From positions 124,001-188,000 of the IMG/VR virus record IMGVR_UViG_3300048672_001051: a DNA stretch of 64,000 nucleotides; one strand, written 5' to 3'. Made by a program: the position numbers and the translations under genes. Numbering within the stretch: position 1 is the first letter of the stretch; each line of letters begins with the position of its first letter. Positions 21,285 through 62,434 of the stretch are shown here, piece by piece. The notes under the pieces were generated by a model that was not told where the DNA came from, searched no databases, and worked only from the letters and a program-made list of their open reading frames with translations.

Positions 21285-21291
21285 ACAACAA

Positions 21292-44546: not shown

Positions 44547-44547
44547 A

Positions 44548-44934: not shown

Positions 44935-44951
44935 ACTTTAAACCTGTAACT

Positions 44952-45305: not shown

Positions 45306-45306
45306 A

Positions 45307-46483: not shown

Positions 46484-46484
46484 A

Positions 46485-46922: not shown

Positions 46923-46942
46923 TATAAATCTCTAAATTTTAA

Positions 46943-47353
46943 TTACAAGTATCTTAAAGATGCCGTATCAATAGGTCTGTTGTTAATCCAAAAGCGTTTT
47001 GTTCTGTTAGGTTCATATAAACTCCCATGCACAGAACAACGTTCTTTGCAGAAATATTTCCTTTTTGTAGGTGATAAGTGAAAACCAATCAGTTCAAGAT
47101 TTTTTTTACGATAATAGATTTCACTATTAAAGTCTAAGCTGTTGACATATTTACCAGCACCTAACTCTTTTTTAAATTTTTTTAAAAATTTAGAATTCTG
47201 GGAGTTATAATTTTCTAAAAAATGCCTAATTCTTGGAATAATATTTTTTAAATCTGTAGAATTTTCAATTTTAATATTATTAAAATAATTAAAAAAAACA
47301 GTTTGTTCAGAAATTTTTTTAACAAATTTTCTAAATTTTTTTTCGGTTAACAT
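46943..47353 (-). CDS. LRxL-array paralog 8
   Basis: VHG...WIN...LRYL. Confidence 0.8.
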   Translation of the reverse strand: MLTEKKFRKFVKKISEQTVFFNYFNNIKIENSTDLKNIIPRIRHFLENYNSQNSKFLKKFKKELGAGKYVNSLDFNSEIYYRKKNLELIGFHLSPTKRKYFCKERCSVHGSLYEPNRTKRFWINNRPIDTASLRYL

Positions 47354-47370
47354 TATAAAGTCCTTAGTAG

Positions 47371-47772
47371 CTACAAACTTCTTAAAGAAGTTATTAATGT
47401 TTGGTGCCCATTTAGATATAAAGATATATCATTAAAATGTTTAGAAGCGCCGTGTTGTTTAGTATCTAGTAAAAAATACATATATTGCTTATTTTGAAAT
47501 ACTAATTTATGTCTACGATTTGGTGGACCTATAGTGTAAATAGCATAAGTAATTTTATTAACTTTTAAATATACGCTACAAACATAACCAAAACTGCTGT
47601 TAAAATTTGGTAATTTAATATACTTTCTTGATGCTAAAAATCTAACATAAGCCCAAAAGTCTTTAAGATTACCATTACTACTTAAAGACAGCATATAATT
47701 TGTTCTACTTCCAAGAGTATATTTATCAATTTCATTTAGTACAGTTTGAATTTTATTCATATTACAATTCAC
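47371..47772 (-). CDS. LRxL-array paralog 9
   Basis: KDFWAYVRF...QHG...LRSL. Confidence 0.8.
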   Translation of the reverse strand: MNCNMNKIQTVLNEIDKYTLGSRTNYMLSLSSNGNLKDFWAYVRFLASRKYIKLPNFNSSFGYVCSVYLKVNKITYAIYTIGPPNRRHKLVFQNKQYMYFLLDTKQHGASKHFNDISLYLNGHQTLITSLRSL

Positions 47773-48187
47773 TTAATTTTAAATTTGAAATATGTTTATC
47801 ATTAACATAAATTAGATAAGAAGTAGTACCAATCTGCGCCATACCGTGAGACTCATCCTGTTTTTTATAAGTTTTTTGATTTGACATACTAAGTAAACCA
47901 AAAGTATTGTCAGAACTATTAACATAACCTACAACTTTTAAGCTGTGCGGTGCTATAAGGTGTCCAGCAATTTTTAATTCTAAATCTTCTAGATTAAAAA
48001 AAGTGTAACGTTTATAAAATCGCAGAGTACCAAAAAATTTCATTAAATTTTTATAATTATTTAATGAAATTTTTTTCAAAGATATCAAAGCATTTGTTGC
48101 AAAGTATGAACTAACTACAGAATTTTGCTCTGCAATAGCCTCTATTTCACCTAATATTTGTAAACATGAATCTTTAGTTTCTAGCAT
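47762..48187 (-). CDS. LRxL-array paralog 10
   Basis: SHG...YVN...LSEL. Confidence 0.8.
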   Translation of the reverse strand: MLETKDSCLQILGEIEAIAEQNSVVSSYFATNALISLKKISLNNYKNLMKFFGTLRFYKRYTFFNLEDLELKIAGHLIAPHSLKVVGYVNSSDNTFGLLSMSNQKTYKKQDESHGMAQIGTTSYLIYVNDKHISNLKLSEL

Positions 48188-48202
48188 AATTTGTAATAAT
48201 CC

Positions 48203-48583
48203 TTAAAGATTTCTTAATGTTCTATATGCAGGTACCCTACAGCCTTCAAAATAGAAGGTTGTTATATTACCTGTCTTAGAGCAGCCGTGTATAACATTTT
48301 TAGAATAAAAATTAACTCTAATAAAAGATACTGAAAAACCTACACAACTATTATTACTTGTTAGGTAGTAACTTACTGTATTATCTGTTGAAATTATAGC
48401 ACCATAGCTTTTAGAGCACAGGTACATCTCAAATAAGCCTCTAGATATTTTTTTTAAATAGCGCACTTTAGCCCAAAAATACTTATATTCACCAGCATCT
48501 AAATGTTTTTTTAAAGTTTGGATACTCTTATCTTCGTATATATCTAAATCTATTATATATTTCAAAACATCTTGTGGGGTCAT
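48203..48583 (-). CDS. LRxL-array paralog 11
   Basis: KYFWAKVRY...IHG...LRNL. Confidence 0.8.
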   Translation of the reverse strand: MTPQDVLKYIIDLDIYEDKSIQTLKKHLDAGEYKYFWAKVRYLKKISRGLFEMYLCSKSYGAIISTDNTVSYYLTSNNSCVGFSVSFIRVNFYSKNVIHGCSKTGNITTFYFEGCRVPAYRTLRNL

Positions 48584-49065
48584 AAGTCTCTCAATCTTAA
48601 GTTTTTTGGGGCGTAGCAGTCTGGTTTAAATAAAAATTTAAATTTTATAGACTGGGCTTCGTATACAGTACCGTGTGACCCAGTAAATTTTGTTTGAAAA
48701 TGTTTAGAATATGTATGCACTACTAACCCTACGTTGTTTAAATTTTTACCATTTGCGTAATAACTACAGTTTTCTTTATAATAATATCCAGACATATTTA
48801 AATTAAGTCTAAAATAGGTTGGAAGTTGATAATTTATATATCTTGCATACCCCCAAAATTTTTTAAAATCTTTGTCCATAAAAAATTTTAAAAGTTTATC
48901 GTATTTTGCGCTTGATACCGTGTCTAGTGCATAAAAATATTGCAAAACTTTTAAAGGATTAACAATAACTGTGTAGTTAAAGCTTTTATAAAAAAGCATT
49001 AAAGTTTTTGTAGAATTATCATATATCTTAATATTTAAAATATAGTTTATAAGCTTATTAAACAT
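48580..49065 (-). CDS. LRxL-array paralog 12
   Basis: KKFWGYARY...SHG...LRDL; start uncertain. Confidence 0.8.
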   Translation of the reverse strand: MFNKLINYILNIKIYDNSTKTLMLFYKSFNYTVIVNPLKVLQYFYALDTVSSAKYDKLLKFFMDKDFKKFWGYARYINYQLPTYFRLNLNMSGYYYKENCSYYANGKNLNNVGLVVHTYSKHFQTKFTGSHGTVYEAQSIKFKFLFKPDCYAPKNLRLRDL

Positions 49066-49067
49066 AG

Positions 49068-49466
49068 TTATAAGTACCTTAAATTTGAAATATGTATAAG
49101 GTCACCGTCTAGATAATAAGCTACCTCAGAGGAGTTGTGCTGATATGTGCCGTGCCTTGAAGAGTTTTTTAAAAAATAATTAAAATAATATTTATTGCTT
49201 TTAACTAAGCCAATTAAATCTCTAGCTGTATTTATAGTGTATAGTGCGTTTTCACCCGGAGTGTTTGCACTCCCCGCTACATTATAAAAGTTAGTTAATT
49301 CATAAAAATGTACTATATATCTTAAATATTTTAAAGCTTCGTTAAACATTAAATTTTTAATATAGTCTTCAGCAGTTTTTATATGACTAAAGTGTATCTG
49401 AGGTATTTGTTTTAAAATTTTTAAAATCTGCTGAGGTTTTAAATTATTAAAATCTGTTGTAATCAT
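49068..49466 (-). CDS. LRxL-array paralog 13
   Basis: RHG...YLDG...LRYL. Confidence 0.8.
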   Translation of the reverse strand: MITTDFNNLKPQQILKILKQIPQIHFSHIKTAEDYIKNLMFNEALKYLRYIVHFYELTNFYNVAGSANTPGENALYTINTARDLIGLVKSNKYYFNYFLKNSSRHGTYQHNSSEVAYYLDGDLIHISNLRYL

Positions 49467-49834
49467 AAATTCCTTAAACCTGTATACGGTATTTTTTTAC
49501 CCATCAGATATAACCTTGTATTCTTGCGATCAACATCATCTTTAAAACTTCCATGTTGCATATTATTACTTGTAAAATATTTTAAATATTTATATTCTAA
49601 ATAGCCGACTTTATAAAAATCCTTAGAAGTGCCTATAAAAAAAGTATGCCAATTATTAATATCTCTAGTTTGACCGGTTTTAAATTTGCCTAGGTTTAGA
49701 TGAGGAATTAAATAATATCTAGCGCGCTCCCAAAATAATTTAATATCATTTGTAAGGTAAATTTTATTCAGTGCATTAAAAATTGAAGCATATTTTAAAT
49801 ATTCTAAAACTTTTTCTGGTGTGTCGTAAATCAT
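49463..49834 (-). CDS. LRxL-array paralog 14
   Basis: KLFWERARY...QHG...LRNL. Confidence 0.8.
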   Translation of the reverse strand: MIYDTPEKVLEYLKYASIFNALNKIYLTNDIKLFWERARYYLIPHLNLGKFKTGQTRDINNWHTFFIGTSKDFYKVGYLEYKYLKYFTSNNMQHGSFKDDVDRKNTRLYLMGKKIPYTGLRNL

Positions 49835-49846
49835 TTTATAAGCCTA

Positions 49847-50278
49847 TTAAAGATTTCTTAAAGTAGTTTTTAAACTTAACTTTTGTCCATAAATATAGTG
49901 AAAAGCTGAAGTAATTTTATAATATTCAAAAATGTTGATATCAAAAAATTGTCCATGAGGCAAACTTGCAGTGTAGTAACCTTTTTTTGTAGCCCTTTTA
50001 TAAAGTCCAAATCTTTCTGAGTTATTTTTAATATAATAGTTTGGTGCGTCATTATAGTCGAACGCTACATAACCTTTAGCAGTATGTGAATTTAAAAATT
50101 TTGCATCTAAGCGCCAACGCATAGTGTTAATATATCTAATATTATTCCAAAAATTATTTAAATCATCGTTAATAATATTTGTAACTAATTTTTCATAAGT
50201 TTTATTATTAAGATTATTTTTTATATATTTTAAAATATCAAATATTTCTCGAGCTTCTTCAACACTTACTTTACCCAT
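49847..50278 (-). CDS. LRxL-array paralog 15
   Basis: NNFWNNIRY...PHG...LRNL. Confidence 0.8.
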   Translation of the reverse strand: MGKVSVEEAREIFDILKYIKNNLNNKTYEKLVTNIINDDLNNFWNNIRYINTMRWRLDAKFLNSHTAKGYVAFDYNDAPNYYIKNNSERFGLYKRATKKGYYTASLPHGQFFDINIFEYYKITSAFHYIYGQKLSLKTTLRNL

Positions 50279-50279
50279 A

Positions 50280-50669
50280 TTATAATTCCTTTAAAGCTAC
50301 ATTTAAAATATTATTGTTAACCAACAACTCGTAACGTCGCCTATTTAGTTTTGTTGTTGCAGGTAAAACTCTACCATTCATAAAAGTTTTATGACTGCGG
50401 TTGGCTATTACGAGGCCAACTTTTAAGTTATTACTTTTTATGTAAAAAGTGCTTAACATACTATGAGTTATAACAAAAGCTTTACCGATGTTGTAAATAC
50501 CTAAATCAATTTTTAATTTATAATAGGATTTTATTCCACGCGCAAACATCCAAAATAACTTATCGTTTTTAGATAACAATTCACGTCTTAGCTTATAAAA
50601 TTCTAAATAAACTTGAGAATGATTTCTTAAAAGTTCATCCATAAATTCTTCAGGTGTGTCAAAAACCAT
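50280..50669 (-). CDS. LRxL-array paralog 16
   Basis: KLFWMFAR...LKEL. Confidence 0.8.
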   Translation of the reverse strand: MVFDTPEEFMDELLRNHSQVYLEFYKLRRELLSKNDKLFWMFARGIKSYYKLKIDLGIYNIGKAFVITHSMLSTFYIKSNNLKVGLVIANRSHKTFMNGRVLPATTKLNRRRYELLVNNNILNVALKEL

Positions 50670-50681
50670 TGCATAATGCTC

Positions 50682-51068
50682 CTATATATATCTTAAATTA
50701 TTTACATTCAAATTTGAACCATTAATAAAATATACACCTGAAACTTTACTAAATCCGTTTAGCATGTTTTTATTATAAAAAGAACTCGAAGAATCACGGT
50801 TGTGTAGTCCAAATTTTACAAAATTTTTTTTAAAATAGTAAAAATTTCTAAAAGAGTTGCTTGCAAAACGTCCGGTAGATATTTTAGAATTTTTACTGAC
50901 AGGTTCTAAATCTAAAATACAGTTATTAGTATATCGGATAATTTCCCAAAACTTTTTATAATCACCTTCGTTAATACTATTTAATAATCTTACACAGAAA
51001 GAGTCTTTAGCGCCTAAATTATTTTCAATATATTTAACTATATTAAATATTTCTACAACTTCAGTCAT
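50682..51068 (-). CDS. LRxL-array paralog 17
   Basis: KKFWEIIRY...FING...LRYI. Confidence 0.8.
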   Translation of the reverse strand: MTEVVEIFNIVKYIENNLGAKDSFCVRLLNSINEGDYKKFWEIIRYTNNCILDLEPVSKNSKISTGRFASNSFRNFYYFKKNFVKFGLHNRDSSSSFYNKNMLNGFSKVSGVYFINGSNLNVNNLRYI

Positions 51069-51070
51069 AA

Positions 51071-51445
51071 CTACAAATCTCTTAATTTTAAAAATTTTGG
51101 TAAAGGTTTATTATCAATAATAAACCTACCCCTAGTATTTTGTCCGTGATAGCAGTCATTTTTAAAATATTGTACTTTACGGTCATTATAATGTTTTCCA
51201 AATCTCTGTCGACGACTGTTTACATAAAATTTATCGTTAAATAAACTGTATTTTGCAAAACCAGCTTTACGTTTATCGGATAAAATTTTTAACTCTTGAG
51301 TAAATTCAATATGTCTACAAATTTTCCAAAAATCTTCTAAAGATTTTTGGAAAATAACTTCAAGAATTTTTTTAAGACCGGGAGATTTATTACCCAAGCT
51401 TTTTTGAAATTCTTTATATGTTTGAAATATTTCTTCATGATCCAT
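51071..51445 (-). CDS. LRxL-array paralog 18
   Basis: EDFWKICRH...YHG...LRDL. Confidence 0.8.
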   Translation of the reverse strand: MDHEEIFQTYKEFQKSLGNKSPGLKKILEVIFQKSLEDFWKICRHIEFTQELKILSDKRKAGFAKYSLFNDKFYVNSRRQRFGKHYNDRKVQYFKNDCYHGQNTRGRFIIDNKPLPKFLKLRDL

Positions 51446-51446
51446 T

Positions 51447-51872
51447 TTATATATACCTTAAGTTTTTTACAGATAGAGGTCGGCCATTAATAATAATTCC
51501 AGTTTCACTGCTAGTACCATGATACTGACTATTATTAAAAAAATTTAATTCGCCATTCCAGTTATCAAAACCTAAAATACAATGGTCTTTAACATAATTA
51601 GTTACAGTTAAAGTTTTACCAGAAATAGCTTTACCAGTAGGATATTTATTAAATATCCTACTTAGGTTTAGCTCTTCATTTAAATTTAAATTTAAATAAA
51701 TATGTCTAACTACACACCAAAACAAATTTATATTTGGAGGTTCAGCCAAAAGGCTTAGTCTTAATACTTCAACACTAACTTGTGTATCATAAGCTAAAGA
51801 ATCGTAACAGTTATCTTCAGCTATAAGATTATTAATATAGTTTAAAAATTCTTCACATTCTAATATGTCCAT
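51447..51872 (-). CDS. LRxL-array paralog 19
   Basis: LFWCVVRH...YHGT...LRYI. Confidence 0.8.
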   Translation of the reverse strand: MDILECEEFLNYINNLIAEDNCYDSLAYDTQVSVEVLRLSLLAEPPNINLFWCVVRHIYLNLNLNEELNLSRIFNKYPTGKAISGKTLTVTNYVKDHCILGFDNWNGELNFFNNSQYHGTSSETGIIINGRPLSVKNLRYI

Positions 51873-52279
51873 TATAAATACCTTAAGTTAGTAACATTGC
51901 ACGCGACAGCATTTACATAAAATCTTCTTGTGTGTTGACAATAACCGTGAACTTTACCTAAAAATCTAGCGCGGTACAAATAGCCTGATACTCCTGGGAG
52001 CCGAATAACGCCAAAAACTATAGAATTACTATTTACGTAAATTTTAAGGTCTTCAGCATGTCGGTTACAGACTCCAGCTTCATATTCATATAGTGTAAAA
52101 GTAAAATTACATAAATATTTAAAGTATCTTGCAACTTCCCAAAATCTTTTGAAAGACTTTTTAATTAAAAGATTTTCCAAATATTCATAATCACGGTGGC
52201 TTAAGTGTATAAATCTTTCTAAAACTTCAGTTGCTTTTTGAAACTCACTCATTCTTATAAATACCTTAAATTTGAACAT
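51872..52279 (-). CDS. LRxL-array paralog 20
   Basis: KRFWEVARY...VHGY...LRYL; likely start MSEFQ. Confidence 0.8.
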   Translation of the reverse strand: MFKFKVFIRMSEFQKATEVLERFIHLSHRDYEYLENLLIKKSFKRFWEVARYFKYLCNFTFTLYEYEAGVCNRHAEDLKIYVNSNSIVFGVIRLPGVSGYLYRARFLGKVHGYCQHTRRFYVNAVACNVTNLRYL

Positions 52280-52638
52280 TGAATATAAATATTTTTTATA
52301 TAAAATTCAGGGTTAGTCAGACTGCCTGAGCAGCCATGTAAAGTATCATTCACGTGAAATTGCTTTTTTTCGCAGTAGTTGTGTCGCCCAATTCTTTTAA
52401 AATTACTGTTAAAATAACAAAATTTTTTGTCTGTTAAATCTAGACTATATCCACTATTATATTTTCCAAAAGATACGTCGTACCTAAAACCGTGCTTAAT
52501 ATAACGAGCTACACTCCAAAATTTTTTTAAGTCTCCAGTTATTAAAATATTATTTAAAGTTTTTAATATACGTGTTGGGTACTTAAGTGTAGCCATATGG
52601 TCTATTATTACGTTTGGATCTTCAATAACTTGTAACAT
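52255..52638 (-). CDS. LRxL-array paralog 21
   Basis: KKFWSVARY...LHG...LRYL. Confidence 0.8.
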   Translation of the reverse strand: MLQVIEDPNVIIDHMATLKYPTRILKTLNNILITGDLKKFWSVARYIKHGFRYDVSFGKYNSGYSLDLTDKKFCYFNSNFKRIGRHNYCEKKQFHVNDTLHGCSGSLTNPEFYIKNIYIQCSNLRYL

Positions 52639-52639
52639 T

Positions 52640-53002
52640 TTAAAGCTCTCTTAATTTTAAATCGTAAATTGGCTTACCGTTAATTTTGAAACCTAAATAA
52701 CCTGTGCCATGCAATTTATCTTTATTTACAAACAAATGTCCAATTAAACATTTGTTTAGACCTACTCGCTCACTTTTTGAATTTACGTAAAAAGTTATTT
52801 GACTACTCATATTTTGTGAAAAACCAGAAGTGTGTGAATTTAACTTTAAGTGTGGACACAGACCTTTTAAAAACCTTGCATATATCCAAAAAAATTTAGT
52901 ATCACAACTTTTAACAATAGCTTTTAAATTTTTAAAAATAGTGTCATTAGACTCAAACTTAATTTCGTTTAAAAAAGTTAATATTTCTAATTCTTGATTC
53001 AT
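52640..53002 (-). CDS. LRxL-array paralog 22
   Basis: KFFWIYARF...LHGT...LREL. Confidence 0.8.
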   Translation of the reverse strand: MNQELEILTFLNEIKFESNDTIFKNLKAIVKSCDTKFFWIYARFLKGLCPHLKLNSHTSGFSQNMSSQITFYVNSKSERVGLNKCLIGHLFVNKDKLHGTGYLGFKINGKPIYDLKLREL

Positions 53003-53004
53003 GC

Positions 53005-53388
53005 TTATAAATGCCTTAAACTTGTTATAGGTCGACTATTACTTTTTATATAAAATTTTTTTGTAAAATTAGAATAGCCGTGTGCATAACCGTCAAGTCT
53101 AAATGTTTCACAAGATTTTCTCTCTAAAAGAAAAGTTTTACCAAATTTTCTGCCAGTACTATTTAAATAGTAAGCCCAATTATTATCTGATCTTTTGGCA
53201 AGACCAGACTCATATTCATATAATCCAATAGGAAGTCTTGATTCATATTTAATATATCTAGCTATTTCCCAAAATATTTTAAAGCATTTCTGCTTTAAAA
53301 TATAATTAAGATTAATGCAAATAATTTTGTAGCGCGCAAAATTTTCAAAATATTCTAAAACTCTGGTTGCTTTTTCAGATTCATTCAT
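53005..53388 (-). CDS. LRxL-array paralog 23
   Basis: KIFWEIARY...AHGY...LRHL. Confidence 0.8.
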   Translation of the reverse strand: MNESEKATRVLEYFENFARYKIICINLNYILKQKCFKIFWEIARYIKYESRLPIGLYEYESGLAKRSDNNWAYYLNSTGRKFGKTFLLERKSCETFRLDGYAHGYSNFTKKFYIKSNSRPITSLRHL

Positions 53389-53389
53389 A

Positions 53390-53788
53390 TTACAAGTACC
53401 TTAAGCTATTAACATGGTTAATAAAATTATTTAAAAAATATTTTTGCATAGTAAAATTATAACCGTGAAGTTTGTTTTGAATAGTGAAATAACGTTGAGG
53501 ATCTTTTCTATTGTCAACAACTTTACCTACTCGTCTGCTAATAGAATTAACATACGCATAGTAGGTATTTGAGCTGTTTATAGCTTTTCCAGCGCTATAT
53601 TCTGCTAAGTCTAAAGTTATTAAAGATTGATATTTTAATTTCAAATATCTTACATACTCCCAATAACGTTTAAAAATTCCTGTCTTTAAACCAAAATTAT
53701 ATTGCTCAGTTAAAAACTGCAAATTAAATTTCTCTTTAGAATTTTTAATTTGCATAAAAATATTTGCACCAAATGTCAAAACATTCAT
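53390..53788 (-). CDS. LRxL-array paralog 24
   Basis: KRYWEYVRY...LHGY...LRYL. Confidence 0.8.
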   Translation of the reverse strand: MNVLTFGANIFMQIKNSKEKFNLQFLTEQYNFGLKTGIFKRYWEYVRYLKLKYQSLITLDLAEYSAGKAINSSNTYYAYVNSISRRVGKVVDNRKDPQRYFTIQNKLHGYNFTMQKYFLNNFINHVNSLRYL

Positions 53789-53791
53789 CAG

Positions 53792-54226
53792 TTAAAGCTC
53801 TCTTAATTTTAAATTAAAAACATCTTCGTCATTAACACTAAATCCGAGACTATGAGTACCATGGCAGGTACTGTCTGTACAGTAGTACTTATGATCATCT
53901 GACGAGATATGCAAACCTATTGTAAAATTATCAGATTTTATATAACTAGTTGTTATAAGTTTTATCGGATCTATAATAGCACCTACTGGGTACTTATTAT
54001 AAAATTTATCTAAGTCTGCGTACCAACTAAATATATCATATGCATATCTGACTACGCCCCAAAAAAAGACTGAATTTAGAGGTTTTTGAGTTGCAATAAA
54101 ATCTAGCCTATTTACAATATCTATAAGTGTTGGTGAACACTCACCTTCAATACTTATTTTCACTATCTCTAAAACTTCTTTGAAGTATTTAACAACCTCT
54201 AAACACTCTTTTAATTTCAAATCCAT
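53792..54226 (-). CDS. LRxL-array paralog 25
   Basis: FFWGVVRY...CHGT...LREL. Confidence 0.8.
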   Translation of the reverse strand: MDLKLKECLEVVKYFKEVLEIVKISIEGECSPTLIDIVNRLDFIATQKPLNSVFFWGVVRYAYDIFSWYADLDKFYNKYPVGAIIDPIKLITTSYIKSDNFTIGLHISSDDHKYYCTDSTCHGTHSLGFSVNDEDVFNLKLREL

Positions 54227-54227
54227 A

Positions 54228-54620
54228 CTATAAATGCCTTAAATGCAGGTCAATCATGTCGCCATTAATAATAAAATAACTTTTATCGAGAGTATTACTT
54301 TGTCCATGGCTTGTACCTTTAAAACGAAAGCTGTGAGTTTTAATCCAGCCGGCTGCTACACAATTACCTAGTCTTATACCTGAAGTTGTACAGTAAAATT
54401 TTCCAAAAAATTTATTTGGTACTTGGCTAAAACCTTCAGAATATTTTTTTAAATCTACATTTTTCGTATGACAATTTTTTAAATAACGAGCTGCTTGCCA
54501 AAATACTTTAGCACTTCTTTCAATATTAATGACATTTAATAAAATTTTATAAGCTTCCTCATTTTCTTTTTTAAAGTCTGTTAAAACTTTAAAAATTTCT
54601 AACGCTTGAACTTCATTCAT
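54228..54620 (-). CDS. LRxL-array paralog 26
   Basis: KVFWQAARY...SHG...LRHL. Confidence 0.8.
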   Translation of the reverse strand: MNEVQALEIFKVLTDFKKENEEAYKILLNVINIERSAKVFWQAARYLKNCHTKNVDLKKYSEGFSQVPNKFFGKFYCTTSGIRLGNCVAAGWIKTHSFRFKGTSHGQSNTLDKSYFIINGDMIDLHLRHL

Positions 54621-54622
54621 AT

Positions 54623-55003
54623 TTACAGATACCTGAGAGATTTGATACGATTAGGAATACCGTTTAAATAATATTTTTTATCTATTTGGTCATAGCCGTG
54701 AAGCTCACCTTTAATATAAAAATATTCACGATTATCAAAAATAGCGCGACCAAATCTTTCGAGAGAGCTTGATAAATATCCTGGACGTCTAGACTCTGAA
54801 TTAAATATAGGTCCAGCAGTGTATTCTTTTAAATCTATTTCATGTCCAGCACACGCTTTAAAAAATCTCAGTATCATCCAGTATTTTTTAAAATTGGCAG
54901 TTTTTAATGCCAATTTAAATTCGTCTTTTAGTTCACTGCCTAGCTTATGACGCGTGTCCGGAATAAGTTGAAAAATATGCTGTGCAAATAGTTCTTCTCT
55001 CAT
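54623..55003 (-). CDS. LRxL-array paralog 27
   Basis: KKYWMILRF...LHGY...LRYL. Confidence 0.8.
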   Translation of the reverse strand: MREELFAQHIFQLIPDTRHKLGSELKDEFKLALKTANFKKYWMILRFFKACAGHEIDLKEYTAGPIFNSESRRPGYLSSSLERFGRAIFDNREYFYIKGELHGYDQIDKKYYLNGIPNRIKSLRYL

Positions 55004-55455
55004 TATAACTCTCTTAGTCTTAAAGTATTTTTTAGTGCGCGATCATTTATATTGAAACTAATACTATTATTAATACTGCAAGTCCCATGCTTCATATCTT
55101 TAAGTCTATAACTTGTACTCTCCAAGTAATAATCCAAACCTATTAGTTTAAAATCTGTTGTAAGATAACTTACAATTTTTAAATCTGTCGGTGATCTAGC
55201 CAAACCTGCAGGATATTTATTTAAAGTTTTGTCGAAATAATAAAAATAATTTGCCAAATTTAAATAGACATAACGGGTTATCTGCCAAAAACAAATAATA
55301 CTTGGACTAGGAGATTTAAAAATGTAGTCTAAAATTTTACAAGCAAGCGATAATTCATCAATATATTTTATACGAACATTTTTAAGCATTTCAGGCGTTT
55401 CTAAATATTCTTTAAAATATCTTAAGATTTTTTCAGAGTCTTCTAGTTGTGTCAT
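55003..55455 (-). CDS. LRxL-array paralog 28
   Basis: CFWQITRY...KHGT...LREL. Confidence 0.8.
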   Translation of the reverse strand: MTQLEDSEKILRYFKEYLETPEMLKNVRIKYIDELSLACKILDYIFKSPSPSIICFWQITRYVYLNLANYFYYFDKTLNKYPAGLARSPTDLKIVSYLTTDFKLIGLDYYLESTSYRLKDMKHGTCSINNSISFNINDRALKNTLRLREL

Positions 55456-55457
55456 AA

Positions 55458-55835
55458 TTACAAATCTCTCAGTTTTAAATTAGAATTTAAAACACAATTA
55501 TTTATTTTTAAAATAAATATTTTTGAAGCCTTATTAACATACACGCCGTGCATTCCACCGTTATTTTGAAAAAATTTTAAATTAATATTGTCATATTCGC
55601 CGAAAGACCTGAGATAACTATTAAAATAATATTTTCGATTAGTGCCAGGCGATACATACAAACCAGCTCTTGTTAGAAAATTTGGCCGTACTGGACGGCC
55701 AACATCATATTGTAATTCTCTTAAAACACCTAGGAATTTAGTTGTCTCACCGTCAGCTAACATTTTTAAACATAAAATATATGCATACGTATTTTTCGGA
55801 ATATTTTGTAATAAATCTAAAAATAATATTTTCAT
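55458..55835 (-). CDS. LRxL-array paralog 29
   Basis: YYFNS...MHG...LRDL. Confidence 0.8.
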   Translation of the reverse strand: MKILFLDLLQNIPKNTYAYILCLKMLADGETTKFLGVLRELQYDVGRPVRPNFLTRAGLYVSPGTNRKYYFNSYLRSFGEYDNINLKFFQNNGGMHGVYVNKASKIFILKINNCVLNSNLKLRDL

Positions 55836-56242
55836 TATAAATGCCTTAATTCTCTAGTTTTTACATCACGGCTGTTAATAATAAAAATAAAGCCTCTCTC
55901 AATGTCAAAAACCCCATGTTTTCGACTTTGTTTGTAATGCCTTCTAGCTACACTATTAAATTTAGCCATACCAATTACTTTGTCTTGTTTGTTTACATAA
56001 TAATGATAATTACCTAATATTGATGTAGCTAAGCCTGAACGCATGTGGCCTATATCTACACCCGAAGGCTTTATAGCTTTATGGTAATTATAATGTCTAA
56101 TAATCTCCCAAAATTTTTTAAAATTGTTAGTAGCAATTAAACTTTCTAATTTTCTAGTAGTTTTTTTGTCAATACTTGGTTGATTATACTCTTGTATAAT
56201 TTTTAAAATTTCATAAGGATTTGTAGTAATCATTTGCCACAC
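55835..56242 (-). CDS. LRxL-array paralog 30
   Basis: KKFWEIIRH...KHG...LRHL. Confidence 0.8.
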   Translation of the reverse strand: MWQMITTNPYEILKIIQEYNQPSIDKKTTRKLESLIATNNFKKFWEIIRHYNYHKAIKPSGVDIGHMRSGLATSILGNYHYYVNKQDKVIGMAKFNSVARRHYKQSRKHGVFDIERGFIFIINSRDVKTRELRHL

Positions 56243-56254
56243 CTTTGTTAATAT

Positions 56255-56674
56255 TTATAAATACCTTAGATTTTTTTTGTAAAAAAAATCATTATTAATA
56301 TACATGGTAGTAATATTATTCAGGAAAGCCATGCCGTGAAAATAATTATTTTTAAAAAATAAACATTCTTTATTAATACCAGTCTTGTGTAAACCTATTC
56401 TTAAGCCTAAGGAGTTAATATAAAAACTTTCATTGCCTGAGTTTAGGCTAACAAAACCGCTTGCCTTACTTCCTAGCGGTATTTTTAAATCATAATTTTG
56501 ATTAACATACCGACATACTTCCCAAAATTTTTTAGTATTATTTTGATAAATCAATTGTGATAGTATTGCAGGGTAATCTTTTAAAGTAATATACTTTTTT
56601 GTATATTTTTCAACTTCTTTTATAATTTCTAAGGGTTGCATTTCTAGAGATTCCTTAAAGACTTTGTTGGGCAT
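56255..56674 (-). CDS. LRxL-array paralog 31
   Basis: KKFWEVCRY...FHG...LRYL; likely start MQPLE. Confidence 0.8.
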   Translation of the reverse strand: MPNKVFKESLEMQPLEIIKEVEKYTKKYITLKDYPAILSQLIYQNNTKKFWEVCRYVNQNYDLKIPLGSKASGFVSLNSGNESFYINSLGLRIGLHKTGINKECLFFKNNYFHGMAFLNNITTMYINNDFFYKKNLRYL

Positions 56675-57039
56675 TCAGAATTATTAATATAATTTTGAAA
56701 ATAAGAATTCACAGTACGAACTCCGTGTAATTTTCTATTTTTAAAAAATAATTTTGCTTTATGATGGATTGATAAACCCACCACCTTACCTTTACTATTT
56801 AAATAGTAACTACTAGATAAGTTATGCATACAAGCTAAGCCCACTAAACGTGGGCCTGTAATATATTTTAAATCAAATTCATTTTTTAAATATCTGTACA
56901 GTTCCCAAAATTCTTTAACATTTTTAGTAGTACTTAAAAGATTGTAAACATAATGATTACAGTCAGCAGGATCTTTTAAAATTAATTTTAAAAGATCATA
57001 TATTTCAATAATTTCGTGTTGTTCAATTGTCTTAGTCAC
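56644..57039 (-). CDS. LRxL-array paralog 32
   Basis: KEFWELYRY...LHG...LRNL. Confidence 0.8.
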   Translation of the reverse strand: MTKTIEQHEIIEIYDLLKLILKDPADCNHYVYNLLSTTKNVKEFWELYRYLKNEFDLKYITGPRLVGLACMHNLSSSYYLNSKGKVVGLSIHHKAKLFFKNRKLHGVRTVNSYFQNYINNSECPTKSLRNL

Positions 57040-57408
57040 TTATAAATACCTTAAGCTCCGCCATGTCAGTAAATTGCCTTTAAGCCAGAATTTATGAAAT
57101 CTATCATCGCAACCATGCCTATAGCCTTGACAATAAAAAACTCTATCTCGAGAGTTTCTTGCAAATCCAAATTCTCTAGCTTCTCTATTAATATAACTTA
57201 AAAAATTAGAATTAGAGTTATAAATTTTACCAGCAGTATACTCACCTAAAATTAAATTAAACTTTTCTGTTTTTTTAATTCTACGAGCTACACTCCAAAA
57301 TTCTTTAAAATTTTGGTTAAGAAGACATTCTTGCAAAAGTCTAGTGTCAATATGGTAACTAAATCTTAAGTGGTCTAAAACATTTTTAGCTGATTCTAAT
57401 TCAGTCAT
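57040..57408 (-). CDS. LRxL-array paralog 33
   Basis: KEFWSVARR...RHG...LRYL. Confidence 0.8.
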   Translation of the reverse strand: MTELESAKNVLDHLRFSYHIDTRLLQECLLNQNFKEFWSVARRIKKTEKFNLILGEYTAGKIYNSNSNFLSYINREAREFGFARNSRDRVFYCQGYRHGCDDRFHKFWLKGNLLTWRSLRYL

Positions 57409-57409
57409 A

Positions 57410-57886
57410 TCATAAATACCTTAGCCTAGTCACATTACTTCGTATTCCATCAATATAAAAATCAGGTGCATTGAATCTTTTATATGCGCCATGTCTAATA
57501 TTATTTTTAAAATAACATGATTCATTATCAGACCTTTGACACAGACCTATCATGCCACTATTTTTTAATTTATAATAAAAATTATTATAACGCATAAACT
57601 TACCATTAAAATAATGTTGTAAGTTTATTTCAGGGCAATAAGAAGTACTAATATATTTTATTTTAGGCCAAAAATTTTTGGTATTATTGTCTGATAGAGC
57701 ATTTTTAAAAAGTCGCAAAATATCTACAGACTTTAAAGATCTTTGATAAACAGTTCTAACTATATCTTCACGAGTGTGACACTTTTTTAAAATTTCTTTT
57801 GTATTACAAGGATTGTAAAAAAAAGGAAAAGGACTTGGTGACAATATGGTTGAATAAGCCATAGACGTAATATCTGTAGGGTACAT
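57410..57886 (-). CDS. LRxL-array paralog 34
   Basis: KNFWPKIKY...RHG...YIDG...LRYL. Confidence 0.8.
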   Translation of the reverse strand: MYPTDITSMAYSTILSPSPFPFFYNPCNTKEILKKCHTREDIVRTVYQRSLKSVDILRLFKNALSDNNTKNFWPKIKYISTSYCPEINLQHYFNGKFMRYNNFYYKLKNSGMIGLCQRSDNESCYFKNNIRHGAYKRFNAPDFYIDGIRSNVTRLRYL

Positions 57887-57898
57887 AAAATATCCGTT

Positions 57899-58117
57899 TT
57901 AAAGTTGTAATAGTGTAATATTTTTTGAAAGTTTTTTACCAGCTATATATAATGTAATATTCTCTTGATCCTGTAGCGAAGAACCATGTCTTCCAGCTAT
58001 AGAGTTAAAGAAACTTTCAAAAGAGTCCATATATAACCCAACAATTCTTGCCAAACTATCTCTAAAATAATTGCCGTATTCGCCAGTATAGTAACCTGCA
58101 ACTTCAGATTTTTCCAT
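57899..58117 (-). CDS. LRxL-array paralog 35, lacking the N-terminal helical half
   Basis: 72 aa: GYY...IVG...RHG...LYIAG...LLQL. Confidence 0.7.
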   Translation of the reverse strand: MEKSEVAGYYTGEYGNYFRDSLARIVGLYMDSFESFFNSIAGRHGSSLQDQENITLYIAGKKLSKNITLLQL

Positions 58118-58276
58118 AAAAATGACTCGTTATTGTAAACAAAAAAGGGGTTTTAAGCTAAGATGCTAAAGCTTTGCACCCCTTAAAATAAGTATACTTA
58201 AATAATATTGCTTAAAAAAATGACTCGTTATTGTGATAGAAAAATTTTTTAAAAACAATTCTAACAACAATAACGA
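58118..58276. repeat. 19-bp direct repeat and partial inverted copy upstream of the array
   Basis: AAAAATGACTCGTTATTGT at 58118-58136 and 58216-58234; ACAATAACGA at 58267-58276. Confidence 0.75.
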
Positions 58277-58770: not shown

Positions 58771-58800
58771 GGTGTTTCGGAAGTTAACTTCCGAAACACC
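58771..58800. terminator. Perfect 30-bp palindrome after the RNAP stop
   Basis: GGTGTTTCGGAAGTT|AACTTCCGAAACACC. Confidence 0.65.
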
Positions 58801-58810: not shown

Positions 58811-61800
58811 TTACATACCTAAACTTTTCATTAGTGCATCTAAGTCATCTGGCGGAACGTTACCATTTGAATTAGCGCCTTCTTGAATGTTAAGGTCACT
58901 AAACTCTTCAGGATCTGCACAGAAAGCCTCAAATTTCTGACGGATCTCGAAAAGTTTTGAAACAAGTGAACCGAAATATGTGTTTTCAGAAATGAATGTC
59001 TCCCACATTTTCAATTCACTTTCGTCTACCGGAATTCGACCCTTATTGTATAAAGAGATAAAATTCCGACAACCTTTTAAAGCCTTCGAATGAGAACCCC
59101 AAGTGATAATAAACAAAAGTTTATTAATATCACCAAGGGTCATCCGATATTCAGGTTTTTGCAATTCAGCAATAATAATCTTACGATTTTCAGGCAATGC
59201 CATATTGCGCAGAAAGAACATTTCAAAGTCCTTACTACCATTTTTGGCATGCTTAATTGCTTCAATAACTTTTTCCTGAACCAAACGAGTATAAGCAAAA
59301 GAGAATTGTTTAAATTCTAAATCGCTAAGGGGCTGCAATAAAACAGGGTTAGGGACATTAGCAGTTTTGTATAAACCTTTATTTGCGACAAAGAATGCTT
59401 GATAACACTGCATTAAAGCAGTAGCAGTCCAAATGTCTAGGGTGGCAGGGCCAATATTAGCTTTAGCAACAGAGGCATTAAGCAAATACTGTTGATAGCA
59501 TGGAATGCCATTTTGAGGTGCCATTGGAACTTTGTTCAGTTTATAAACATGTTGACCAATAGGTAACAACTTGTTAGTTGTTTCATACTCACCATCAATA
59601 TACTCTTCATTCCAACATAATTCTTGCTCAAGAGGTTGAGGCCGAACAAATCGACGAAGAATTTCTTGACCAATTGGATTAGGAATAGCTAATGGTAGAG
59701 CATCACCATCACAATCACTTCGTGCTTCCAAAGCAATAGTAGGGCTGATTAACAGAATGTCACTATTGTACCGAGGATTCAAATACGCGTGCAAATCAAT
59801 ATTATGCACTGTCTTCAAATACATTCGGAACAAGTTAACATCCCAAATACGAGGTACTTGTAGCTGCATTTCCCAAAGTACAGGATTACGCACTGCTAAG
59901 CTACGAGGAACTTCGTTTAAAGCACGATCTACAGCTTGTTTGTCTAAAGTGCCATGCTCATTTAAACGCGCTAAGATGTCAATCTGAGAACTAACAAGAC
60001 GTTCCCAATCATCACCAAAGGCTTCATTCGAGATACGTTCAAATTTAGACTGACTCATAACAACAACAACATCAGGTGGTAGATAATGATCAACTACCTG
60101 TTTCATACCAAAGCCTTTCATACGAGGCTTGATAAGATGTTGAATTACCATTTGAGCGGCTTCTTCGTCTGAATAAAGCGTCGATTTAACTGCACGCAAA
60201 TACTCGTCTAAAGCATAAGACTGTTGTCGATTGTTGTCAGGCATTAACATGTTTCGGAAAACTTTATTATACCCTTTCAGGTATTTATAGTTTTCACGAA
60301 CAAGTCGCAAAATCTTAGACAATCGAATTAAAATGTCTGGATAATTTGTTTCGCCACTCATAAGTCGACCAGTAAACCGGTTCAACAAATAAGCACTAGG
60401 CATCCGGACACAAGGGCCGCCGAGAGAGCTGAAATCCAAATAAAAACCATTCGGATTATATTCAGCATTTAACAAGCGAGAATTAGATGGAAAAATTGCC
60501 TTCTTTGTTAATACAAAGTCGTCAGGTCCATACATAGGATTCTTACTAATTAAATCGGCAGGGGTGATAATTGGAAGTTCATCAACTTCTGAAAATACAG
60601 CGCGATCATCTGTTAGAATTTTAAACAATTCATAAACAGCTTTAATAGAATCAGGATCACGATAACTTTCAAAAATATGATTTGCAAGTTCAAGCGATAC
60701 GCCACCTTGGAATGTTAACATCTTCAAGGTTTCAAACATTACAGATTGAGGTTTCCAATCTGCGTAGATGTCAGTAATTTCAGTGTAGTTGATATAGACA
60801 AGTCCAATCTCAACGTTAACTTCATTACCAAAATTATCTACATATTTGTATTCAGGCAAAGACTGAGACGCAGCATTAATTTCAGCTTCATCCAATGAAT
60901 TTAAATAGCCTGAATTACCACGTTTAACACTGGGTTTATAGTAGCCCAGCTTAACAGCTAGAGCAGCTCGTGCTAAAACAATGGTGTTTGATGCAGCTTT
61001 AACAGCATTCATACCAGTAACAATGTCCGGTACGAGAAAATCTTTTTCATTCCAAGTGTTATCTGTCGAGGAATCTCCAAGATATTCAGAAGCATTTGGA
61101 TAACGTTCAGCAATAGCAGAGTCATCAAAAACATTCTTAAACATAATCTTACCAGTATTGGTAAGAACTTTAGTAACACCTTTAAGTCCGGTGCTACTTG
61201 TGATACGGCAGTTACCTGCACGGCAAATACCTTTAAAACGAATTTTAAAAGAATTTGCAATGCTTGTCGCATCAATAGAAAGTACAGTAATGGTTTTAAA
61301 ATTGTACAAGTCGATAGGACTTGACAAGTTATTCAACCCAACTGTAAATGTTTTAAAAGAAGGCTGATAAGTCTTGCCAGCTTCTACTAAAACTTCAGAA
61401 AAAATTTCTTCAATACTGAAAGAAACTTCTAAAGCTTGAGCTGCAATAGTTGCTGCAATTTCAATTTCACCGGAAACAAAACGTTTAGTGTCTGGGTCCA
61501 TTGGATGAAATACAATAAAAGCTTCACGTTGGCAATCGTCTTTACGAGTAAAGACGTCACCATTAATGATATAATCCTGTGTAAAAACAGAATTACTAGG
61601 GTTTTCAATCTTTAGATGCTCTCCTAAAGAATGAGTTTTAAGACGAGCAGCTAACGACTGTTTATTATCGAAAATAGTCAAGATCGAAGGAACTGTATCT
61701 CGAAGATTTTCAGAATAACCTGTGTTGCGAAACATAAAAGGCTGTTCACCTGTAAACAGGCTAACAGTAGCAGTTTTAGACATACTACCTTCAGATGTCA

Positions 61801-62434
61801 GATGAATCTGACAATCACGGATAATATTTGGCCAATCTTTTTCACGAGGTTGTGAATTAGAAATAATTTGGCCAAGAACAAACTTACCATTATTGATTTT
61901 GTCCAGATGTTGATTAAAACTAAGAATAACAAAAGAATGTTCAGATTTTTTCTGAGCATTAAAACTTACAGGCTTGGTATAATTTGCAAAAGACTGCAAA
62001 TTATTAATATCAGTGTTTAACAAACCTGTATAGATGTCTTTGCTGTACTGTTGATACATATTAAGACGATCTACTAAAATAAGATAAAATACTTGATTTT
62101 GATTAAGAATCAAATAATTATGATGACCAAAATAATCAATTCGACTATTAGAAGTCGAGCTGACTTCTACGAGAAAAGGATAATACGTTGTCTGCACTGG
62201 TGCAGTGCTAGGTGAAAACAATGTTTTACGAATAATAACTTCCATTGCATGAGTATCACTGCGAGGGAAAGCTATAATAACATCATCATCAGCATTAATA
62301 GAATAATTGCACAGCCCACTGTAACCTTGAGGCAGGTGTCCAATAAGTTCTTCAGCTGTGCAATTTGCCGGAATATCACGAAAGGCTTGTGTGCGTACAA
62401 TACCATCCAAACGTGCAATCGGAAATGAAGACAT
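58811..62434 (-). CDS. Single-polypeptide two-barrel DNA-directed RNA polymerase (beta-like plus beta-prime-like)
   Basis: Beta-like RITSSTGLKGV (K/R-x7-K) and PDIV; beta-prime-like VRNPVLW and catalytic RSDCDGD at 59702-59716. Confidence 0.8.
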   Translation of the reverse strand: MSSFPIARLDGIVRTQAFRDIPANCTAEELIGHLPQGYSGLCNYSINADDDVIIAFPRSDTHAMEVIIRKTLFSPSTAPVQTTYYPFLVEVSSTSNSRIDYFGHHNYLILNQNQVFYLILVDRLNMYQQYSKDIYTGLLNTDINNLQSFANYTKPVSFNAQKKSEHSFVILSFNQHLDKINNGKFVLGQIISNSQPREKDWPNIIRDCQIHLTSEGSMSKTATVSLFTGEQPFMFRNTGYSENLRDTVPSILTIFDNKQSLAARLKTHSLGEHLKIENPSNSVFTQDYIINGDVFTRKDDCQREAFIVFHPMDPDTKRFVSGEIEIAATIAAQALEVSFSIEEIFSEVLVEAGKTYQPSFKTFTVGLNNLSSPIDLYNFKTITVLSIDATSIANSFKIRFKGICRAGNCRITSSTGLKGVTKVLTNTGKIMFKNVFDDSAIAERYPNASEYLGDSSTDNTWNEKDFLVPDIVTGMNAVKAASNTIVLARAALAVKLGYYKPSVKRGNSGYLNSLDEAEINAASQSLPEYKYVDNFGNEVNVEIGLVYINYTEITDIYADWKPQSVMFETLKMLTFQGGVSLELANHIFESYRDPDSIKAVYELFKILTDDRAVFSEVDELPIITPADLISKNPMYGPDDFVLTKKAIFPSNSRLLNAEYNPNGFYLDFSSLGGPCVRMPSAYLLNRFTGRLMSGETNYPDILIRLSKILRLVRENYKYLKGYNKVFRNMLMPDNNRQQSYALDEYLRAVKSTLYSDEEAAQMVIQHLIKPRMKGFGMKQVVDHYLPPDVVVVMSQSKFERISNEAFGDDWERLVSSQIDILARLNEHGTLDKQAVDRALNEVPRSLAVRNPVLWEMQLQVPRIWDVNLFRMYLKTVHNIDLHAYLNPRYNSDILLISPTIALEARSDCDGDALPLAIPNPIGQEILRRFVRPQPLEQELCWNEEYIDGEYETTNKLLPIGQHVYKLNKVPMAPQNGIPCYQQYLLNASVAKANIGPATLDIWTATALMQCYQAFFVANKGLYKTANVPNPVLLQPLSDLEFKQFSFAYTRLVQEKVIEAIKHAKNGSKDFEMFFLRNMALPENRKIIIAELQKPEYRMTLGDINKLLFIITWGSHSKALKGCRNFISLYNKGRIPVDESELKMWETFISENTYFGSLVSKLFEIRQKFEAFCADPEEFSDLNIQEGANSNGNVPPDDLDALMKSLGM

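Follow-up and report, generated by a model that had tools for sequence, protein, structure and literature searches.

A single open reading frame of 1207 codons occupies the minus strand near one end of the stretch of DNA analyzed here (hereafter the window), which comprises 64,000 nucleotides, positions 124,001 to 188,000, of the IMG/VR record IMGVR_UViG_3300048672_001051, the 98%-complete genome of an uncultured 230-kb freshwater phage. The frame begins with an ATG at 62434, preceded by an AAGGAA ribosome-binding site a few bases upstream, and ends with a TAA at 58811-58813. The coordinates given in a preliminary description of the locus are exact, although the gene lies on the minus strand. 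The gene resides among non-structural genes on that strand, including a tRNA synthetase, NAMPT, an RNA ligase, and a Pif1 helicase, and is adjacent to a 35-gene array. A strong hairpin follows its stop codon (RNA fold −27.5 kcal/mol, z −6.4, with 0 of 200 shuffles folding as well), for which a role as transcript 3' end or stabilizer is inferred. The features of the locus are compiled in the table below.

Features of the candidate RNA polymerase gene, with coordinates in the window and residue numbers in the translation
Feature	Window coordinates	Strand	Residues
Whole ORF, candidate single-chain two-barrel RNA polymerase (family A)	58811..62434	-	1-1207
beta/Rpb2-like module	60755..62374	-	21-560
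Flap-like sandwich-barrel-hybrid insert (probable)	61220..61435	-	334-405
RITSSTGLKGVTK, basic pair of the beta-type barrel (R410, K418)	61169..61207	-	410-422
PDIV			near 469
beta-prime/Rpb1-like module	58955..60613	-	608-1160
KPRMKGFGMKQV, first strand region of the beta-prime-type barrel	60095..60130	-	769-780
Double-psi beta-barrel of the beta-prime type (predicted)	59666..60124	-	771-923
VRNPVLW, presumed counterpart of the R-x-P-x-L-H motif of beta-prime	59873..59893	-	848-854
RSDCDGD			905-911
DCDGD, predicted Mg-binding catalytic loop	59702..59716	-	907-911
38-residue helix, bridge-helix candidate	59384..59497	-	980-1017
KHAKNGS, conserved K-H...G-S, trigger-loop-like candidate	59234..59254	-	1061-1067
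Perfect 13-bp hairpin beginning 10 nt after the stop codon, no U tract	58771..58800	-	

The protein and a profile of 46 sequences were compared with Pfam, PHROGs, NCBIfam, and PDB sequences, yielding only chance-level hits, with no Pfam family at E <= 1, including the RdRP family PF05183 and the T7-like polymerase family PF00940. Nine distant relatives likewise match no Pfam family. Homologues form 123 representative clusters, and an alignment of 46 of them (28% mean column identity, 20-40% identity among the sequences) shows that the motifs noted in the preliminary description are conserved rather than chance matches. G416, K418, G774, Q779, R849, P851, W854, D907, D909, G910, and D911 are invariant, and P770 and K778 are present in 45 of 46 sequences. 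Residue 410 is arginine in 45 of 46 sequences and lysine in the remaining one, so that the beta-like motif, with its two basic residues eight positions apart, reads R-x7-K in this family and not K-x7-K, as had been suggested. Similarly, the cysteine in the DCDGD loop, which had been highlighted in the preliminary description, is not a family feature: position 908 is cysteine in 18 of 46 sequences and otherwise V, T, N, S, A, L, or I. Further toward the C terminus, K991, T998, and W1002 are invariant and G995 is found in 45 of 46 sequences, within a helix whose assignment as a bridge helix is an inference; K1061 (46 of 46) and H1062 (45 of 46) belong to a segment for which a trigger-loop-like function is also only inferred.

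An AlphaFold2 model built on the 46 homologues is confident (pLDDT 88.3, pTM 0.85) and matches two-barrel RNA polymerases. In a Foldseek search of the PDB, the top 50 hits are all second-largest RNA polymerase subunits with a probability of 1.0. Structural alignment with VIA-align, carried out after Foldseek and independently of it, placed the N-terminal module against the whole length of beta/Rpb2 (Z 12-15), with the beta C-terminal chains of the AR9 and phiKZ non-virion polymerases matching residues 234..560 (Z 12.5 and 12.2, respectively). The C-terminal module aligned with Pol I A190 (Z 10.1), Pol II Rpb1 (Z 9.7), archaeal A' (Z 9.1), and M. tuberculosis beta-prime (Z 8.3), with all alignments starting at model residue 608. 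Within this module, isolated DPBB domains (VAT-N, Cdc48-N, and the designed DPBB proteins 7dww, 7dbo, and 7dvc) match the segment carrying DCDGD at Z 5.5-6.3 and rmsd 2.3-2.7 Å. The insert in the beta-type barrel matches the E. coli and Thermus beta-flap domains (3tbi_B, 3woe_A) and the NusG SBHM (2xhc_A) at Z 5.1-5.8; these values are modest, and the flap assignment is therefore regarded as probable. The basic pair lies directly after this insert, apparently as KMAGRHGNKGV does in bacterial beta. The resemblance of VRNPVLW to NRAPTLH of beta-prime is likewise a presumed correspondence that is consistent with the fold match.

Across the whole chain, the model aligns with the single-chain enzyme QDE-1 over both barrels (Z 14.8-15.1, residues 74..1176 or 76-1176, 461 residues, rmsd 4.1 Å), and P74-26 gp62 and P23-45 gp96 follow at Z 10.4 and 10.2. 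Among Swiss-Prot models, the best match is the fused killer-plasmid RNA polymerase, K. lactis pGKL2 ORF6 (E 1.7e-12), and a search of AFDB clusters returned two full-length matches that are automatically named DNA-directed RNA polymerase (E 1.6e-23, TM 0.51/0.56, and E 1.2e-13). These data support the central inference of the preliminary description, namely that a beta-type half is followed in one chain by a beta-prime-type half, with two barrels and a DxDGD loop. It is important to note that no sequence-profile method links the protein to any curated RNA polymerase family, and hence the assignment rests on a predicted structure plus motifs.

A simple alternative would be that the protein is not an enzyme but a structural or regulatory protein that merely retains a polymerase-like fold, a view that could draw on the absence of any curated family HMM that recognizes it. 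We consider this very unlikely, as the three aspartates and the glycine of the loop, together with K418, are invariant across the diverged homologues, and decayed enzymes lose exactly these positions. Relatives are interrupted at or beside the loop, in Acinetobacter phage ME3 by an endonuclease gene and in the relative G004 by an in-frame insert, and many metagenomic fragments end or begin at residues 909-914. Homing elements target the catalytic loop in relatives, which fits an essential conserved site.

We next asked whether the genome encodes other polymerases. No canonical beta or beta-prime (PF00562 and PF00623, searched in six frames), T7-like polymerase, or sigma70 region 2 is detectable in the genome, although the genome search for the T7-like enzyme says little, because its control genomes gave no signal either. 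Two further two-barrel-like candidates lie outside the window. The first, paralogue B, is a distant 1211-residue protein with an NDADGD motif (hhalign probability 97.7%, E 1.5e-12), which shares the motif of the bridge-helix candidate and, as MKHS, the K-H...G-S segment. A word-based homology search for B found only one close relative, and B was found in other genomes only through a weak profile hit followed by genome-by-genome searches. It lies upstream of the family A gene in all six environmental genomes examined, always 14-30 kb away and on the same strand, but was not found in ME3. The second candidate is an 1830-residue protein in the virion module that carries the crAss-type DFDFD motif, a DxDxD conserved with ME3 gp036, between a virion structural protein and a peptidase. 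It is flanked by a 1311-residue protein and a 2154-residue lytic internal-virion-type protein, in an order syntenic with ME3 gp035-gp037. Each of the two is a full-length chain with its own DxDxD loop, which makes them look like parallel enzymes rather than missing subunits. The structure prediction for B from a 6-sequence alignment failed (pLDDT 29), and the three-polymerase scheme therefore rests on profile similarity and motifs.

These candidates bear on whether the family A protein could instead be a virion-packaged polymerase that is injected with the DNA to transcribe the earliest genes, as several phage single-chain two-barrel enzymes, such as crAss gp66 and P23-45 gp96, are virion proteins (bioRxiv 2020.03.07.982082; PMC10770324). 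This appears unlikely, given that the gene lies in the non-structural minus-strand block far from the structural module and that the 1830-residue protein is a better candidate for such a role. A further possibility, which we consider less likely than not, is that the protein is the catalytic core of a polymerase that cannot work alone and requires one or more phage-encoded partners, for example a small beta-prime C-terminal subunit like killer-plasmid ORF7, a promoter-specificity factor like phiKZ gp68, or even paralogue B in a heteromeric enzyme. In agreement with this notion, its nearest full-length structural match, pGKL2 ORF6, probably works with a separate small subunit, the flap docks initiation factors in cellular enzymes (PMC7824862), and A and B co-occur in six of six environmental genomes. 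In contrast, the chain extends through the bridge-helix-like and K-H...G-S segments to about residue 1180 with high pLDDT and aligns to beta-prime/Rpb1 up to residue 1160, so no obvious catalytic piece is missing. Moreover, no neighboring small gene is conserved beside A in relatives, and B has its own complete DxDGD loop and a similar length.

The evidence also allows for a two-barrel polymerase with a different task, such as an RNA-dependent or ssDNA-dependent polymerase like QDE-1 or a primase-like enzyme that makes primers for phage DNA replication. QDE-1 is the best single-chain structural match, the protein-language features of residues 740-1180 are nearest to PF05183 RdRP clusters, and the use of phage two-barrel polymerases for priming has been suggested for other jumbo phages (PMC7824862). 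However, the N-terminal half aligns along the whole beta/Rpb2 subunit and carries a flap-like insert that is described as absent from RdRPs and YonO-type enzymes (PMC7824862), PolD DP2 scores only Z 6.6, and the lack of a detectable host-type sigma or other RNA polymerase leaves transcription needing an enzyme. We therefore regard this alternative as improbable.

A de novo search for promoter motifs in 102 upstream regions gave mostly AT-rich noise, and the one clear promoter-like motif class lies outside the window and could belong to any of the three candidates. No promoter could be tied to this enzyme. Sigma70-like sites around the gene are no more frequent than chance (25 sites against 24.4 expected). 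The proposal in the preliminary description that the enzyme transcribes the adjacent array has no support, considering that the hairpin follows the gene, that the array has its own upstream gaps, and that the array family was not found in the flanks of relatives.

Taken together, the most likely explanation, in which we have fairly high but not complete confidence, is that the gene encodes a catalytically competent, DNA-dependent RNA polymerase of the two-barrel superfamily in a single chain, although only two DNA metagenome runs contain the sequence, there is no biochemical or transcript evidence, and activity, DNA template, timing, and independence from partner proteins are inferred. In this model, the N-terminal 560 residues represent a pared-down beta subunit whose double-psi barrel carries a flap-like insert and supplies R410 and K418, and the C-terminal 600 residues represent a pared-down beta-prime whose barrel holds three invariant aspartates that would bind the catalytic Mg2+, followed by the long bridge-like helix and the conserved K-H...G-S segment. 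Its inferred role, which is less certain, would be that of a non-virion polymerase made during infection that transcribes middle and/or late phage genes without host RNA polymerase. It would be one of three phage polymerases, with the 1830-residue DFDFD protein injected for the first genes and B acting before A.

Single-chain two-barrel polymerases are known, but the present family is invisible to Pfam, PHROGs, NCBIfam, and PDB sequence searches, although we cannot exclude that it appears in the alignments underlying a published list of 23 two-barrel families (PMC10770324) or in those of Drobysheva 2021. Its only cultured relative is ME3 gp152+gp154, annotated as hypothetical, and a 2021 survey states that phages of ME3's group encode no RNA polymerase. 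If the enzyme is active, statements about the transcription strategy of this lineage need revising, a chain of this size that retains the cellular beta/beta-prime layout, including a flap, would be a tractable minimal system for studying two-barrel catalysis and promoter recognition, and the co-occurrence of two to three divergent polymerases per genome offers a new case of polymerase cascades in phage development. More speculatively, it is possible that a whole clade of 170-243-kb phages, comprising freshwater metagenomic genomes plus ME3, transcribes its genome without the host enzyme by a cascade of up to three unrelated-looking single-chain two-barrel polymerases, a virion DFDxD enzyme, then B, then A. 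Family A would then be the most compact known enzyme that still keeps the cellular layout (lobes, flap, clamp-side, bridge helix) in one chain, a natural minimal model of a cellular-type RNA polymerase, and a possible intermediate between multisubunit and single-chain forms.

Among characterized systems, the fused beta-then-beta-prime architecture is closest to that of killer-plasmid ORF6 (UniProt P05472) and less like that of QDE-1, crAss gp66, or, without a direct comparison having been run, YonO. ORF6 is of similar size (982 vs 1207 residues), the match covers query residues 41-993 against 94-966, and both proteins belong to the type whose beta barrel carries a flap/SBHM insert (PMC7824862 for the plasmid enzyme). 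Yet the two share 9% identity with no sequence-level relationship shown, the phage protein extends about 200 residues further at the C terminus, and the plasmid enzyme is cytoplasmic in yeast and probably uses the ORF7 subunit, no counterpart of which was found beside the phage gene. QDE-1 and the eukaryotic RNAi RdRPs share the single-chain arrangement and a DxDGD loop with Gly at position 4, but RdRPs are said to lack the insert in the beta-type barrel (PMC7824862). YonO of SPbeta is a phage-encoded, single-chain, two-barrel, rifampicin-insensitive type of enzyme of about 100 kDa (PMC5467207); YonO-type proteins are grouped with RdRPs and lack the SBHM insert (PMC7824862), and our searches, which did not include a YonO sequence, revealed no sequence or profile link. 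The crAss-like virion polymerase gp66 (phi14:2, PDB 6VR4) aligns over 573 residues but only at Z 6.3; it has 2180 residues, is virion-packaged, and carries DFDID without the Gly (bioRxiv 2020.03.07.982082), and the 1830-residue DFDFD protein resembles it more in motif and genomic setting. Phages P23-45 and P74-26, whose hosts are thermophiles, encode the non-virion polymerase gp64/gp62 and the tape-measure-fused gp96, two divergent paralogous polymerases acting in sequence (PMC10770324), like A and B here; these are much smaller catalytic cores without sequence similarity to the present protein, and the matches skip most of its beta-like N-terminal half. Finally, the non-virion polymerases of phiKZ and AR9 are jumbo-phage, host-independent, beta/beta-prime-derived enzymes whose beta C-terminal chains superimpose with an rmsd of 4.1-4.2 Å. 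Those enzymes are split into four or five polypeptides (PMC7598289), whereas here everything is fused in one uninterrupted chain that is about half the total mass.

The observation that prompted this analysis, a single gene carrying both beta-type and beta-prime-type polymerase signatures, is confirmed. The gene is one uninterrupted ORF that begins with an ATG preceded by AAGGAA, and each of the motifs on which the preliminary description relied is present in its product (see table). The virus record to which it belongs, a 229,656-bp IMG/VR entry with 34.7% GC that is rated 98% complete, derives from a freshwater metagenome.

Positions of the candidate polymerase gene, of motifs and predicted elements in its product, and of other features of the genome (G000:C1) and of relatives. 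L001, L002 and L004 denote loci; G004 is a further genome.
Feature	Frame	Position	Strand	Details
Family A gene (predicted two-barrel RNA polymerase)	window	58811-62434	minus	1207 aa
RITSSTGLKGV	protein	aa 410-420
PDIV	protein	near aa 469
KPRMKGFGMKQV	protein	aa 769-780
VRNPVLW	protein	aa 848-854
RSDCDGD	protein	aa 905-911
Long helix	protein	aa 980-1017		38 residues
K-H...G-S segment	protein	aa 1061-1067
Perfect hairpin	window	58771-58800		13 bp, begins 10 nt after the stop codon
Exact direct repeat, ACAATAACGAGTCATTTTT	window	58118-58136 and 58216-58234	minus	19 nt
Tandem paralogous genes	window	44082-58117	minus	35 genes of about 120-160 aa (the last is 72 aa)
tRNA genes: Glu, Thr, Phe, Ser, Gln, Leu x2, Val, Tyr, Lys, Asp, Met, Ile, Trp, Arg	window	7161-23961	minus	15 genes
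Pif1-like helicase carrying an intein with a LAGLIDADG endonuclease domain	window	21292-23829	minus	845 aa
Auxiliary genes: TROVE/Ro-like protein with a vWA domain, nicotinamide/nicotinate phosphoribosyltransferase, TerC/DUF475 membrane protein, class I Tyr/Trp-type tRNA synthetase, T4-type RNA ligase	window	25273-26736, 32621-34096, 35048-36091, 39270-40481, 3620-4729	minus	typical of large phages
Candidate B	genome	216781-220416 (= L004:1-3636)	minus	1211 aa, NDADGD at aa 949; outside the window
Candidate V	genome	36982-42474 (= L002:3939-9431)	plus	1830 aa, GDFDFDH at aa 1430; outside the window
Conserved motif, AAAAGCAAAATGGTCT-n-T-n-ATGAGG	genome	190262-216206	minus	25 nt, ten copies; outside the window, 2-28 kb beyond its right end
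Interrupted family A gene, phage ME3	L001	7953-12688
Interrupted family A gene, G004	G004:C1	155290-159006

Searches of Pfam, PHROGs, NCBIfam and PDB sequences returned nothing, either for the protein or for a 46-sequence profile. In contrast, homologues (together with this protein, family A) were recovered as 23 clusters in a set of 5.8 billion proteins, none of them named, as 123 representative clusters in an exhaustive search, and at 13 IMG/VR loci on contigs of 11-243 kb, ten of them over 100 kb. The only cultured relative is Acinetobacter phage vB_AbaM_ME3 (Metrivirus, 234.9 kb), in which gp152 (798 aa) and gp154 (333 aa) are 31% identical to the two parts of the protein, are separated by an endonuclease gene, and are annotated as hypothetical. 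In the 46-sequence alignment, which has a mean column identity of 28%, G416, K418, G774, Q779, R849, P851, W854, D907, D909, G910, D911, K991, T998, W1002 and K1061 are invariant, and R410 is an arginine in 45 of 46 sequences. The cysteine of the DCDGD loop, which the preliminary description had singled out, is incidental: position 908 is Cys in only 18 of 46 sequences, and a more distant group of about 1000-aa proteins carries SD-x-DGDL-x-P, again with a variable x.

A structural model of residues 1-1200, predicted by AlphaFold2 with the same alignment, is confident (pLDDT 88.3, pTM 0.85). The top 50 matches in a Foldseek search of the PDB are exclusively second-largest RNAP subunits, at probability 1.0. 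Re-alignment of these hits with VIA-align and a search that does not depend on Foldseek agree. Residues 21-560 match the whole of beta/Rpb2 (Z 12-15), and within them residues 234-560 match the beta C-terminal chains of the AR9 and phiKZ non-virion RNAPs (Z 12.5 and 12.2, rmsd about 4.2 A), whereas residues 334-405 match the E. coli and Thermus beta-flap domains and the NusG SBHM more modestly (Z 5.1-5.8). Residues 608-1160 match the largest subunits, namely Pol I A190, Rpb1, archaeal A' and M. tuberculosis beta-prime (Z 10.1, 9.7, 9.1 and 8.3, respectively), and residues 771-923 match isolated double-psi barrels, including VAT-N, Cdc48-N and designed DPBB proteins (Z 5.5-6.3, rmsd 2.3-2.7 A). 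The whole chain, over residues 74-1176, aligns to QDE-1 (Z 14.8-15.1, 461 residues, rmsd 4.1 A). The two barrels expected from the preliminary description, which had inferred a compact, divergent single-subunit RNA polymerase, are present in the model, and this main interpretation is supported by computation, although activity, template, timing and independence from partner proteins are inferred.

Further matches were found outside the PDB. Among Swiss-Prot models, the best hit by far is the fused killer-plasmid polymerase pGKL2 ORF6 (E 1.7e-12, query 41-993). Among AFDB fold clusters, two full-length matches of 1052 and 1262 aa are automatically named DNA-directed RNA polymerase (E 1.6e-23, TM 0.51/0.56, and E 1.2e-13). 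In BFVD, the top hits are ME3 gp152 and gp154, followed by a phage "minor tail protein", a Microcystis phage protein, crAss-like proteins and a second ME3 protein. Finally, language-model features of residues 740-1180 are nearest to PF05183 RdRP clusters.

Six-frame searches of the genome found no RNA_pol_Rpb2_6, RNA_pol_Rpb1_2 or sigma70 region 2, and no T7-type RNAP, although the T7 search had no positive control. A scan of long ORFs for DxDxD, however, identified two further candidates, B and V. Comparison of B with the family A profile by hhalign gave a probability of 93%, which rose to 97.7% (E 1.5e-12 over 238 columns) with a 6-sequence B alignment; the aligned columns cover the barrel, the loop, the AK-x-x-[IV]G...T helix and the Q...MKHS segment. 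B is a distantly paralogous single-chain polymerase candidate. A structure prediction for B did not yield a usable model (pLDDT 29). B-type genes of 1116-1151 aa were found in the five other IMG/VR genomes examined, and in all six genomes B lies 14-30 kb upstream of A on the same strand, but B was not found in ME3.

Candidate V lies between a 1311-aa ORF and a 2154-aa protein with transglycosylase and peptidase domains, an order that is syntenic with ME3 gp035-gp037. Its C-terminal 700 residues are homologous to ME3 gp036, which carries DHDQD at the aligned position and sits between a virion structural protein and a peptidase. In addition, a half-length piece in BFVD of an ME3 protein of the right size matched the family A model at E 1e-4. 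DFDxD is the signature of crAss-like virion RNAPs (bioRxiv 2020.03.07.982082), and V is a candidate virion-packaged RNA polymerase. It is important to note that each candidate is a full-length chain with its own metal loop; B and V therefore look like parallel enzymes rather than missing subunits of A, and the family A enzyme is probably one of two or three phage polymerases.

The surroundings of the gene offer no support for the suggestion in the preliminary description that the enzyme might transcribe the adjacent gene array. The hairpin that follows the stop codon lacks a U tract (-27.5 kcal/mol, z -6.4). Farther downstream, after two gaps of about 200 bp and two small ORFs, comes the run of tandem paralogues, which are of about 130 aa, are tightly packed, have no Pfam match, and have a GC content of 27% against about 35% for the polymerase gene. 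A profile of this family found nothing in the flanks of the polymerase gene in ME3 or at 13 IMG/VR loci, so nothing supports a special link between enzyme and array, which represents a lineage-specific expansion of unknown function. The 19-nt direct repeat occurs twice in the gap upstream of the first (72-aa) array gene and nowhere else in the genome, even when 3 mismatches are allowed, and may be a regulatory site. Sigma70-like sites are at chance level, and no neighboring small gene is conserved. The sharply conserved 25-nt motif is co-oriented with the genes, and its copies are mostly in intergenic gaps upstream of small genes, between gene B and gene A. It is a good candidate for a phage-specific promoter class, but it cannot be assigned to a particular enzyme.

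Family A genes of several relatives are interrupted at or beside the catalytic DxDGD loop. In ME3 the loop (DVDGD) sits about 33 residues into gp154, just after the endonuclease gene. In genome G004 the profile match breaks at the same profile position inside one open frame, with an in-frame insert of about 140 codons, and in another genome, G001, a single TAA separates two ORFs. Many metagenomic fragments end or begin at residues 909-914. Homing introns and inteins typically settle in the most conserved sites of essential genes, which fits a catalytic role.

Within the literature searched, which did not extend to the alignments of the 23 families in PMC10770324, the ME3 proteins are never called a polymerase, and later papers on two-barrel enzymes and on freshwater jumbo phages do not mention this family. 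Because two AFDB cluster representatives already carry an automatic RNAP name, what appears to be new is the family rather than the type of enzyme. Other single-chain phage enzymes match the model: P74-26 gp62 (Z 10.4), P23-45 gp96 (Z 10.2) and crAss gp66 (Z 6.3). In the family A chain the beta-like half comes first, followed by the beta-prime-like half. R410 and K418 follow directly after the flap-like insert, and the R-x-P motif, the DxDGD loop, the 38-residue helix (with K991, G995, T998 and W1002) and the K-H...G-S segment follow in the order expected for beta-prime, although the last two assignments are inferences. An SBHM insert in the beta barrel marks cellular and killer-plasmid enzymes and is absent from RdRPs and YonO-type proteins (PMC7824862), and a clade of multisubunit RNAPs and their fused derivatives has likewise been separated from a clade of diverse single-chain phage, plasmid and RNAi enzymes (PMC10770324). 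Although the flap match is modest and the comparison was made without a profile dendrogram, on the present evidence family A looks like a fused, strongly reduced beta/beta-prime enzyme rather than a relative of YonO or QDE-1.
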